NCBI GenBank assembly: GCA_024704765.1 | Contig: JAKMXF010000033.1 | Location: 434,001 to 498,000 of the forward strand | From: Oopsacas minuta | Lineage: Eukaryota; Animalia; Porifera | Length of the DNA stretch: 64,000 nt | Reading direction: 5' to 3' | Shown: positions 23,343 through 33,800 of the stretch, one piece after another | How positions within the stretch are numbered: the stretch's first letter is position 1 | Layout: each line of letters opens with the position of its first letter | Translations under genes and position numbers: made by a program | The notes under the pieces: generated by a model | The model's database searches: none | What the model was told of the DNA's origin: nothing | What the model saw: the letters and a program-made list of their open reading frames with translations, nothing else

Positions 23343-26300
23343 TCAATAGCAATGGTCTAGTAACCATTGACAATAATTGTGTATGTGAGTATGTGTGTCC
23401 ATCAGCTCACTGAGTACTCCTACATCCAACTTACACCCCACACGTACTGGTGTCAGCACACACTGACCCACTCTATGCATACCAAACTGGTGTACCAGTC
23501 TACTAGTCACTCTGTGCCACAACCAGTGACTGGAGTGAGTAGAGATGTGACTGTAGACACTAGCTGCTATGTTATCCACCACAATCAATCCGTTGTTCGT
23601 GAAAGGAGCGTAGTATCCCTTGTGTGTACAGGTGTCTATGTGTAGGACAGGCACTGAAATGAGTGTATGAGAATCTCTTCTCTCTTTCTGCTTCCCTTCC
23701 TCGTCCTCCTGTTGATGTGACAGAGAGGAAGAGGAGGGAGGAGACAGGAAGTGGATAGTGTCTCCCACTCTCAGCTGATGAGCTGGTACTGGTCTCTTGT
23801 TGTCTCCAGTAAGGATGAGATGGTTAGCAGAGATGTGAAGGTGTCCGTGAGGATGTGTGATGTGTAGGAATGTGGCTGTGATGTGTGTGTCTCGATGTGC
23901 CCAGATATACACTTTTGAGTAGACAGGTTTGTATGTAGTAGGATGTATGGATAACACATAATCTCCTATCTTCAATTCATCCATTCTAACTCTATTTCCT
24001 CCTTTCAATATTACACAAGCATTTCCTGGGAAACAAGCATAATCTTCACCTCCAGTTATGACTTGATTTATTGCTACCATACTGAACCTTTCTGTTTGGA
24101 ATTTGTAATTTCCTTTAGCACTCACCTGACTGATATTTGTAACTTTAGTTTTTAAAGTTTTCCTCTGTTTAACGTCAATATAGTATATTACATCCTCTGG
24201 TTTGATATCCGTAACAAGCTTCATCTCTGGTGGTTTATAAGGTTCTTTAACTAATAAAGTATGTTTATGTCCGATCGTAATATCCCCGTATTCATGTGTT
24301 ATCTTGATATACTCGTATGAATCATCTCCAAAACCTTGCCTTGTGTCATAACTTGACTTTTGTATTGGTCCTGCTTTTTTGAAGAGTGTGAATAATGGGT
24401 CTCTGCATAGTATTTCATCATTCTCTACAATATCTTGGATAAATACTTCTGAAAATCTTTGAAAACATCCACGAATACACCATGAGTTTTGTGGGAATCC
24501 TCCTCGAGCTACTCTCAGTGTATTTGATACGCATATTTCTGATAGTCTTTCTCTCGTGTTGTTTAAAAGGGTGTGGTTTATGGACTTACTCTTAGACAAT
24601 GAAAACGGAGATTCAGTCCCTGATGTTAATAATCTATTGCATGCAGTATTATACTCTGGATCCAGTTTGTTAAATATTTTTTTAAATTCATCACTTTTTT
24701 TCGGATTAACCAGTGAGACGAATTCATAAATTGGTAAGTTCCTTTCTTCACTTGAGCTGTCAATATTTAAATTTATAGGAGTCTGATACAGAGAGTACAT
24801 CCAATCTGCTAGTATTTGTGAATTCAGGTTGTTAAAAGTTAGAGAATTTCCAGGATTATCACCTCCCTTCCAATCCAGAACAATTCTTCCAATTGCATCA
24901 AAGTTTGCTCCCTCGTTTATGCTGCTTTCTTGAATAGTATTATTATTCTGTGTTTCCAGTTTATCTAGTATATTAGTTATATATGTATTTATTTGTTTCT
25001 GTGAGTTTCTGACTTGTCCTTCCTTCAGCTCAATTTCCCCCTGCATACTCCCTCCACATTCACAACCAACGATAACCCAATATCCATACTTTTCTAAGAA
25101 TTCTGCATACTCTATCTCCACATGGTTACCTTCTCCAATGCTATTCTCTGGTAGTTCTTTCACTGATTGCTCGAAGCCAGGAGTGAGTTTAAATACTTTT
25201 AGTTTTTCATCTAATAACATTATATTGAATGCGTATATGTTGTAGATAATTTGTAACTGATATTTGACAAAGACTTCCTCTGTTTGTGTATGAATCTGAT
25301 CAATCCTATCACCCAGAACAAATTCACTCAATCGTTTCCATTCTATAAGTCTTTTCTTGATGGGAATTACTGTAAGGATGGACTTTGACAAACTCACGCC
25401 TTCCTGAACATGACAGTCGTGGTCTAGAGCTATAATTTGACTACTGGCCACTTCTCCTGTCTGCCTAATCCTGCCATATCCTATGTGCTGTATGATACAT
25501 TTGAATTCATAAGGCTTAACACCACATCCCTCTATTAAGGCCTTGTTCTCCAGTTGAGATAGTTTGTAGGGATATAATTCTTGTTGTACCTTATTCAGCT
25601 TCATAGACCGGAGAGTATTTAGCTGAGTGAGTGACTTATTGTGTAATTCAGTCATAAGTAACACCAAACTGTTATCTGAATATTCTCCTGGATTTGAGAG
25701 TGCATGTCTTTGTAGTTCTCTATTGACTTCATTTTTGTGTAAATTAGAAAATTCTTTTGTAATGATCACTTTCCATTTATTCAATTGATGCTTTCTGAGT
25801 TGGTCTGGAGTTGATTGCTTCTTGATAACAGGCTCATTGTTTCCCCTGGAAGCGAAATAGAGACGGATTGCTTCTTGTCCCACTTCATCTTTATGCTTGC
25901 TTGTTATTTCTATCATTCCTTCGAACACATTTTTGGGTTGAAGAGTACCATCCTTGAGGACCGTCCAATCTCCTTTTACTTTCAGTTCCTTGTCATCATA
26001 TTCGTTTTCTATGTAGACAATGACAGGCTTAACTTGTAAGTAGCAAATAGATAATTCATTAACAATATCGATTACAGAATTTAGTCTTTCCTTGAAAAAC
26101 TTTTTACCCACGTCCATGACATGTGTGAGTATGATGAGGAGATTAGGTCTGTCTTTGTCAATAATATCGAGCTTAGTAAACGCACGGAACATACGTACAA
26201 TCTGGGCATTCTCTCCCTTTAATCTCTTATCGGTTGCATCAATTACAACCATGACAATACTTGGATAACATTTGTATAAATTAGAGCCAAGATAAGGATG

Positions 26301-30858: not shown

Positions 30859-33800
30859 TTAAATAATAAATGAATGAATGAAAGAAATTTTCATAGACTT
30901 AAGTACCTGATATGAATCTTGTAAAAATTGAGCATACCTGTGTATTTTTGCATCTCCATTAAAGTACTTATCAGCTGTTGCTCCCATTCCTATCTGCTCC
31001 AATAATCGCATAGGAAGGAATAGATTATGTCCAATTTGTTGAAGTGAGGTGAATTCTTTCAATGAAGCTTCTGGTAAACTAAATACGCTTGCAGCAATTC
31101 CATCAACAACTATGTAGCTGTTCATAGTGAAGGGAGCGTAGTATCCCTTGTGTGTGCAGGTGTCTATGTGTAGGACAGGCACTGACATGAGTGTATGAGA
31201 ATTTCCTCTCTCTTTCTGCTTCCCTTCCTCGTCCTCCTGTTGATGTGACGGAGAGGAAGAGGAGGGAGGAGACAGGAAGTGGATAGTGTCTCCCACTCTC
31301 AGCTGATGAGCTGGTACTGGTCTCTTGTTATCTCCAGTAAGGATGAGATGGTTAGCAGAGATGTGAAGGTGTCCGTGAGGATGTGTGATGTGTAGGAATG
31401 TGGCTGTGATGTGTGTGTCTCGATGTGCCCAGAGATACACTTTTGAGTAGACAGGTTTGTATGTAGTAGGATGTATGGATAACACATAATCTCCTATCTT
31501 CAATTCATCCATTCTAACTCTATTTCCTCCTTTCAATACTACACAAGCATTTCCTGGGAAACAAGAATTTTTTTGAGTTTGTAGAACCTTATCAGCAGCA
31601 TCTAACCTTGTCCATACTTCATCCAAATCTACTATTGATGTGTCTAATCTACCTATACTATCTCTATTTCTAATCACCGAAATTGAATGTCTATATTCAT
31701 TTTTCAGACTCTGAGCTATCTTATTGTTGGAATACAGCATGTTACATGCTTTCTGCAATTCTTCCCCTTTTGTTTTGTCGATTTTCTCCACAATATTGGA
31801 TATTGGTGATAGCGTGAAATCATCAGGATCAAATATTGGATTCTTGAAGATTGACTGTACCCACTTGTTCCACTTCTCATGGGTCAATTCTTTGAAATTA
31901 GGGCAATAGTGCCCCTGATCTCCCCCTGCAAATATCAATGGTACCGTGTTCAAATCGATATCATCTTCAAAAGGATTCTCCTCCAATTTGTCATCATCCT
32001 TGATCATCGATATTTTATGTACAATCATAGCACGAACTTGCTGTTCTCCAACATGTTGATTGGAAATTGAATTTATTGTTAAGTTACCAGAAAATCTTCC
32101 ACTTTCTATAGCTCCTTCTATTTCCCAATGTCCATATTTCCTGAGAAAATCTGTATAAGCTACATCTACTTGGTCTTTTGTATAAATTGCGTTATTTGGC
32201 AATTCCTTAATTGATTTTAGGAATTCTTTACTGTGCTTTATCTTTGCAAAATCTTTGTTTTTGACGAAAACACAAACTTTATGAATTATATCAAAGGCGT
32301 ATACCTTGTCATTAATGCCAGTGGTCAGTTCCATACACGATGCTTCTCCACATGATATTTCCGTAGACTGTAGCGGGATTAATTCTATTCCCCTTGGAAT
32401 ATATATCCCTATATTGTGATTGATGTCACAGTCCAGTGAGTTTATATCGAACATATTTGTAGATGATATCGTCTTCGTTTGCTTATTATATCCACAACCA
32501 ATTACCCGAGCTATTTCTTGGAAAGAACTGTGTTGCACTTTAAAAACTTCAAGTAAGATAATTTTATCTGTCTTGTTGAGTAGAAATGGTTTTAGCTCAT
32601 TCTCTATTTCTTGTAGCGTTCTTGCTTGAAGTTCTGCTAGTTTTGTAAATTGAGCTTCCTGCAGGTAGAAAAGCAGCGGAGTCATCTCTTGAAATCGAAT
32701 TACCCCTTTATTCAATTCTGTATACTCTCTAAGTTTTTGGGTAATTTCAGTGCTAACTAATAGTTGCAATTCTTTCATTAACATTTTATACCAATTAAGC
32801 TCGTGGTCATTTAGTTCAATTTCCCTGCCAATATTTACGCTATCCTTTGCTATTCTTCTACCTGACACTTTCAATTTAACTTCGGGATTCATGTGTTTGG
32901 GCAATTTTCCACTGAAATACATACGTACAGCCTCTCTGCCTATATCATCACCGTTCTCCTTCATCAGTGAGATCATGGCCTCGAATAGATTAATAGGTTG
33001 TTTCTCCTTGTCTGTTAGATAAGTCCATTCACCCGCTTTATCAAGGAGATTACCTTCAATGTCATTTTCAATCCATACTACACGTGATGGCACACTTAAA
33101 TATTTACGACACAATTCTTGTATTTCATTATTTTTAGTCACTTTCGTTTCTCTGTATCGTCCTTTGGGAATAGCGCCTGCATGTGTCAATACGAAGACAA
33201 CGTTAGGACGTACTCTATCAACAATCCCTAGCTTAGATACAGCTCTCAGCATGTATGCGCAATTAGAATATTCACCTCCCAGACGTTTTTCAACTGCTGA
33301 TACAACTATCAGTACTATGTTAGGATATATTGATAGATAACTAGAGCTTAAATGTGGGTGTTGTCGAGTGAATTTAGAAATAGTATTCAGATTGACTGCG
33401 TCTTGTATACTTCCATCAGTATCACTCCAGCCCGGGACATCTATAAACCCTATTTCTAGATTATGTATTTTGCAATCATCACTTGTCATATTTACGGCAT
33501 ACTCAGCAACATCTTTCGTACAAGATTGAGTATCAGAAGTACTTAAAAGATCTCTATTAAACAGATGATTTAGAGTAGAAGACTTCCCTGACCCTGTTAC
33601 ACCATATAGGAATATAATAGCCTCGTTGGATGCCCTGTGTGCCCTCAAGCTGTTACCAACCATGTTCATAGCTGGATGACTAACCCCCCTAAAGGCTAGT
33701 AGTCTAGCATCAGAGAGTGTAGCTGGTAGATGTAGGTAGGAATCTTTGGGAGGGTAACTTGTTGCGAAAGTGTCATCCTCCCCTATTATACTGTTATTTG

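Follow-up and report, generated by a model that had tools for sequence, protein, structure and literature searches.

Among described proteins, the closest architecture to the one treated here is GmGIN1 of Glomus mosseae, in which an AIG1-like GTPase is fused to a Hog domain (Burglin 2008, PMC2362128), and the closest structures are those of the Hedgehog C-terminal autoprocessing domain (Drosophila Hh-C; PDB 1AT0, 6TYY and 6TD6). Domain-restricted concerted evolution by interlocus gene conversion in clustered gene families has been outlined in reviews (PMC3966226, PMC3924837), and mosaic divergence in tandem paralogs is the subject of a modelling study (bioRxiv 10.1101/2025.10.29.685298). Here we analysed a stretch of 64,000 nucleotides from the glass sponge Oopsacas minuta (assembly GCA_024704765.1, contig JAKMXF010000033.1, positions 434,001 to 498,000 of the forward strand; hereafter the window), in which three genes, A, B and C, are arranged in tandem on the minus strand and end in an almost identical Hedgehog-type Hint block although the rest of their sequences has diverged strongly. 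Our preferred explanation, to which we assign a probability of roughly 85%, is that these genes belong to a clustered GTPase-MACPF-Hint family in which interlocus gene conversion, confined to the Hint module, has led to concerted evolution of that module.

The sponge genes resemble GmGIN1 in having an AIG1/IAN-like GTPase N-terminal to a true Hog domain and no signal peptide (none was obvious at the N-termini of A, B and C when the translations were inspected by eye). Unlike GmGIN1, they insert a MACPF domain, and often a second, Cys-less pseudo-Hint, between the GTPase and the Hint, and they occur as clustered multigene families. They share with Hedgehog a Pfam Hint match and a start at the catalytic Cys, but have no Hedge signalling domain. 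With known cases of domain-restricted conversion the locus has in common a greater similarity between paralogs than between orthologues, a confined homogenised stretch, sharp drops in synonymous divergence (dS), mosaic tracts and physical clustering of the genes. It differs from those cases in that the homogenised unit is a Hedgehog-type Hint autoprocessing module whose 5′ edge is the predicted self-cleavage site, and none of the top matches of a literature search for gene conversion or concerted evolution mentions a Hog or Hint domain.

Gene architecture and the Hint module

Gene A (23343..26762, minus strand) encodes 1139 aa which, according to its open reading frame (ORF), translation and Pfam matches, comprise an AIG1/MMR_HSR1-like GTPase (MMR_HSR1, 3.4e-05), a MACPF domain (2.1e-09), a Cys-less pseudo-Hint and a Hint with a tail (Hint, 1.7e-34). 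Gene B (27128..30586, minus strand; 1152 aa) has the same architecture, with two Hint stretches corresponding to the pseudo-Hint and the Hint (Pfam Hint, 2e-41). The ORF and Pfam matches of gene C (30859..33882, minus strand; 1007 aa) give a GTPase, MACPF and Hint order that lacks the pseudo-Hint. Hint profile (PF01079) matches in the three genes range from 1e-30 to 1e-41 (105-142 bits against a curated cut-off of 29.7) and reach profile position 206 of 213, thereby including the SRR/ARR tail.

The alignment of the sponge Hint to the Drosophila Hh-C structures begins at the first residue, the catalytic Cys, which is conserved together with the xxH of TxxH, the APxT motif and a tail of SRR type. 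Three positions differ, as seen in the Hint of gene A: TxxH reads SxxH, with Ser for Thr, the general-base Asp (D46 of Hh-C) is replaced by His, and the second Cys (C143) is replaced by Val. The best PDB match, 6TYY, likewise has His at the general-base position. The module is recognisable as a Hint of Hedgehog type and is predicted to cleave at the Cys, which would release the GTPase-MACPF part of the protein.

In genes A and B, and in genes E, F and G found elsewhere in the genome, the active-type Hint is directly preceded by the Cys-less pseudo-Hint, which starts with GGFP. This second module lies at 24036..24503 in gene A and at 27818..28255 in gene B (both minus strand; the latter is matched by the Hint profile at C33:461836-462267, C33 being the contig that holds the window). 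It has not been homogenised, and its nucleotide identity between A and B is 0.41.

The shared block and its edges

Repeat search and alignment placed the homogenised Hint block on the minus strand at 23359..24035 in gene A and at 27138..27817 in gene B, running in each from the Cys codon (24033-24035 and 27815-27817, respectively) to a few codons short of the gene's own stop. In gene C, alignment located what we interpret as a partial conversion tract at 31127..31563 (minus strand), which extends from the Cys codon (31561-31563) to the residues GYYAPFT. The A and B blocks align with 658 matches, 19 mismatches and 3 gap columns (97.2% identity), and the A-C and B-C alignments each have 428 matches and 9 mismatches (97.9%). 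The first 12 bases, starting with the TGT of the Cys codon, are the same in all three blocks, and the 45 nt immediately upstream cannot be aligned between the copies, the last residues before the Cys being EDYA, NPDN and QKNS. An initial annotation made from the letters of the sequence had reported the three near-identical blocks, their start exactly at the catalytic Cys codon, the unrelated codons upstream and the departure of gene C from the block after GYYAPFT (at about 31126/31127), and our alignments reproduced each of these observations, including the different tail that follows in gene C.

The same 5′ edge, TGT, is found in genes E and F and in the tandem pair I/J on another contig. Even the independent cassette of I/J and the diverged copy in gene G have the first 10 nt of the module in common with the other copies, and there too the upstream linker cannot be aligned. 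The 3′ edge is variable: in A, B, E and D′ the block gives way to 2-5 gene-specific codons that precede the stop, and in C it ends after GYYAPFT. What remains of gene C downstream of the tract (30859..31126, minus strand) is its own, unconverted Hint end and tail, which is only 0.44-0.45 identical in nucleotides to A and B and is orthologous to the tail of P0022, a homologue from another assembly. Starting at the Cys codon and ending a few codons short of the stop, the homogenised unit coincides with the polypeptide that the predicted autoprocessing would release. No terminal inverted repeats were found flanking the block, and no LAGLIDADG, HNH or other nuclease family was present among the Pfam matches of A, B and C. 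The Ser/Glu-rich loop, considered as a possible site of a hairpin or recombination hotspot, holds only weak 12-nt inverted repeats, and this explanation was set aside.

The block is also richer in G+C than its surroundings (45.2-46.2% against 36.3-38.0% in the remainder of each gene), in keeping with two earlier spot counts (30/60 within a block, 16/60 outside) that proved exact. At third codon positions the G+C content (GC3) is 0.43 in the block core and 0.48-0.53 in the A and B tails, compared with 0.31-0.34 in the N-terminal parts and 0.25 in the unconverted tail of C. GC3 is raised in the Hint of gene G (0.41), but not in the I/J block (0.315). The raised GC3 fits either GC-biased conversion in a multi-copy lineage or the donor's own composition.

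Divergence by domain and across the family

The contrast between the Hint and the rest of the genes is far beyond chance. Among A, B and C the nucleotide identity of the Hint core is 0.977 and its dS 0.020-0.041, whereas in the GTPase, MACPF and pseudo-Hint parts of the same pairs nucleotide identity is 0.33-0.55 and dS is saturated. The initial annotation had considered that a Hint dS similar to that of the other domains would speak against a recent exchange; the comparison gave the opposite result.

The O. minuta assembly comprises 61.46 Mb in 365 contigs and contains about 13 genes with an AIG1-like GTPase and a MACPF domain, with or without a Hint. All 14 Hint profile matches in the genome fall within GTPase-MACPF genes of this family (A, B, C, D′, E, F, G, H, I, J and K), and six or seven sites other than A, B and C also carry the shared block. 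An unplaced contig of 7.6 kb (C186; L009 1-7569) carries the block in the tail of D′, the complete gene E and the start of the Hint of gene F. Gene G, on C88, contains a copy of the block that is about 80% identical. Gene H is located on C33 about 150 kb away, genes I and J form a tandem pair on C133, and gene K lies on C45.

Between A and G the dS of the Hint is 0.43, compared with 1.15-1.57 in the GTPase and MACPF parts, and gene G therefore took part in an older exchange. The I/J pair constitutes a second, independent case of a step at the Cys: the two genes share 34-69% nucleotide identity along their N-terminal parts and 99-100% from their own Cys codon onwards, with a drop after the Hint core, and their cassette is unlike that of A, B and C in sequence.

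Two further pairs show homogenised stretches outside the Hint. K and M are inverted neighbours on C45 (L043:3430-6554 and L044:1337-3649) whose GTPase parts are 94-100% identical and whose remaining sequence is 30-55% identical; the MACPF part of K is interrupted by a frame break near L043:5409-5496, and M lacks a Hint. Paralogs P1 (18226..20502) and P2 (20803..23103), both on the plus strand of the window, share a 300-nt MACPF stretch at 19588..19887 (plus strand; partner 22153-22452) that is 94% identical (94-97%) in genes that are otherwise 45-74% identical, and this stretch is a separate conversion tract. Since GTPase (K/M) and MACPF (P1/P2) stretches have been homogenised as well, the process is not specific to the Hint.

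Comparison with other glass-sponge genomes

A word search of ENA assemblies other than O. minuta yielded 24 homologues, and the evidence between species described below is at the level of protein. Orthologues of B and C in other glass-sponge assemblies carry a Hint at the same place, those of B being 53-61% identical to B in the N-terminal part. A tree of the N-terminal parts recovers orthology groups that span assemblies (support 100 for the B group, 99 for the C group and 99 for the H group). In the Hint tree, sequences group instead by genome, with support of 99 for O. minuta A/B/C, 100 for c779k+c316k and 99 for c472k+c697k, and for the Hint data approximately unbiased (AU) tests reject grouping by orthology in the case of both B and C (p 6e-6 and 2e-5, respectively).

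Pairwise identities give the same picture. Paralogs within one genome have 33-35% protein identity in the N-terminal part and 93-99% in the Hint, whereas orthologues between genomes have 51-61% in the N-terminal part and 75-81% in the Hint. This excess of paralog over orthologue similarity in the Hint is a signature of concerted evolution. All 11 paralog pairs examined, drawn from six contig sets, show the step at the Cys: identity is 3-25% in the 40 residues before it and 93-100% after it. Located apart from the clusters, the H-type Hint follows orthology in its evolution.

Partial tracts and mosaic sites were found within the Hint. The C-type tail is orthologous between species and has been retained by C-type genes, and the resident Hint of these genes has therefore been partly overwritten rather than newly attached. 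The switch to the C-type tail occurs after GYYAPFT in gene C of O. minuta (Om_C) and in P0003, and earlier in P0022. P0003, from a 58 kb contig of an ENA assembly, joins an A-type N-terminal part to a C-type Hint tail, a chimaera from which it appears that exchanges inside the Hint reshuffle tails among paralogs in other species too. The informative sites in A, B, C and E show two patterns in alternation, AC|BE at positions 40 and 333 and AE|BC at positions 130, 358, 361 and 408, which several exchanges are needed to explain, with the caveat for these sites that the assembly was polished with short reads.

Proposed interlocus gene conversion and alternative explanations

We propose that A, B and C, which belong to a clustered family and each combine an AIG1-like GTPase and a MACPF domain with a Hedgehog-type Hint (Hog) at the C-terminus, diverged from one another long ago, and that repeated conversion among neighbouring paralogs keeps the Hint block nearly identical while the rest of the genes diverges. 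The identity pattern, the contrast in dS, the conflict between trees, the chimeric tracts and the mosaic sites are the direct observations on which this proposal stands. The underlying mechanism would be double-strand-break repair with a paralog as template. The sharp 5′ edge would arise where alignable homology begins, at the Cys codon within the conserved CFP motif: a conversion tract needs homology on both flanks and the linker before the Cys cannot be aligned, so conversion would not be able to pass this point. Selection against replacement of the cargo end may add to the edge. Such a process is an ordinary one, and no new kind of mobile element is needed.

Several points weigh against this proposal. 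A limit set by homology predicts erosion of identity near the block edges, where only a slight excess of variable sites was seen; for this reason selection may also sharpen the boundary. The GC bias is a trend only, based on 18 variable sites that are unpolarised (too few sites were available to polarise weak-to-strong changes with gene G as outgroup), and the I/J cassette has been homogenised without a rise in GC3. The assembly is a hybrid one made with SPAdes, SSPACE, Pilon and GapFiller, and C186 has its ends and a gap in the block, so that copy-specific differences and copy number are uncertain. The comparison with other species draws on proteins and includes no DNA from those species.

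The initial annotation had inferred a recently spread copy-paste module, by conversion or intein-like mobility without an endonuclease, imported from another genomic context. A rival explanation along these lines is a recent copy-and-paste of the Hint cassette, by domain shuffling or by intein-like homing without an endonuclease, onto unrelated N-termini and possibly from elsewhere in a genome. The start of identity exactly at the Cys codon after unrelated upstream codons, the higher G+C of the block and the absence of a Hint from P1 and P2 would all suit such an event. The sponge module also resembles inteins with homing endonucleases in its Hint fold and, in principle, in DNA identity that begins at the first catalytic residue. 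Unlike an intein, however, it has neither an endonuclease nor a C-extein and lies at the C-terminus, the Hint and tail ending the protein, and its spread takes place among paralogs already equipped with a Hint, in a family in which the GTPase and MACPF domains of other pairs have been converted too. That B and C orthologues in other assemblies already carry a Hint at the same place contradicts a recent pasting-on, as does the orthologous tail that C-type genes have kept through a partial overwriting of the resident module. A genome-wide profile search, which could have revealed the cassette fused to unrelated N-termini, placed every Hint in the one family, and there is therefore no other genomic context that could have served as a source of import. 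Import of foreign DNA was likewise rejected, given that orthologues carry the Hint and that the G+C excess sits at third codon positions of a multi-copy block. The copy-and-paste explanation is thus largely refuted by the architecture of the genes across species, and we consider it very improbable; where the initial annotation had offered conversion or intein-like mobility as alternatives, the first is borne out by dS per domain, tree conflict, chimeric tracts and mosaic sites, and the second is not supported, neither an endonuclease nor terminal repeats being present.

Marginally less probable still is that repeat collapse, gap filling or short-read polishing has propagated one real Hint to several loci. 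The tools used for the assembly would permit this, and C186 both starts and ends within the block and has a gap of Ns (3606-3851) inside the block of gene E. We take these breaks as a sign of a repeat that the assembler did not resolve, and the cluster may be larger than is seen on C33. The copies are nevertheless distinguishable by differences at 2-3% of sites and a single 3-nt indel, the window is free of Ns, reading frames are intact in all copies, and high Hint identity within a genome recurs in several independent assemblies of other species, each with a Hint specific to that species. Extreme purifying selection at the nucleotide level without exchange between copies, for example on an overlapping functional RNA or regulatory element, would account for a dS near zero inside the block, but it is scarcely credible, as 19-25% of block residues differ between species against 93-99% identity among paralogs within each genome, a difference that excludes plain purifying selection, the Hint tree follows genome and not orthology, and the incompatible site patterns among copies point to exchange.

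Other features of the locus

P1 and P2, identified by ORF, Pfam match and alignment, have a GTPase and a MACPF domain and terminate in CaaX boxes, CSIL in P1 (20488-20502) and CFIF in P2 (23089-23103). In the alignment, the Cys of each CaaX box occupies the position of the Hint Cys in A, B and C, which suggests that the CaaX ends and the Hint could be two alternative routes of lipid attachment to the same C-terminus. Two plus-strand ORFs at 35433-37043 and 37595-39697 gave only weak Pfam matches (Glypican, dynamin-like helical and Cornifin).

The published O. minuta genome paper makes no mention of Hedgehog, Hint or MACPF, and the GTPase-MACPF-Hint family in Hexactinellida is apparently undescribed. 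Leads from an atlas search point to clusters with a G-domain and MACPF_SNTX in rotifers and chordates, with scores of ≤0.90.

Significance

The family provides a very clean and replicated case of conversion confined to one protein module, with two cassette lineages in one genome and further instances in several other glass-sponge genomes. The process is known and the example new, and the interest lies mainly in the undescribed family and in the fact that the tract edge falls at the predicted cleavage site. A more speculative view, which we think doubtful, is that the released fragment of Hint and tail is selected as a shared, interchangeable module, perhaps for a common cofactor or adduct or a common partner, while the GTPase-MACPF 'warheads' diversify, so that the cleavage site of the protein would also be the boundary of the recombination module. 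If this were true, the family would be an animal counterpart of polymorphic-toxin cassette systems, and P1 and P2 would, through their aligned CaaX boxes, achieve lipid attachment at the same C-terminus by another route. As a practical matter, trees of sponge Hint/Hog domains do not track gene history and should be read with that warning. The family is also relevant to the history of Hog domains before Hedgehog and possibly to innate defence in sponges.

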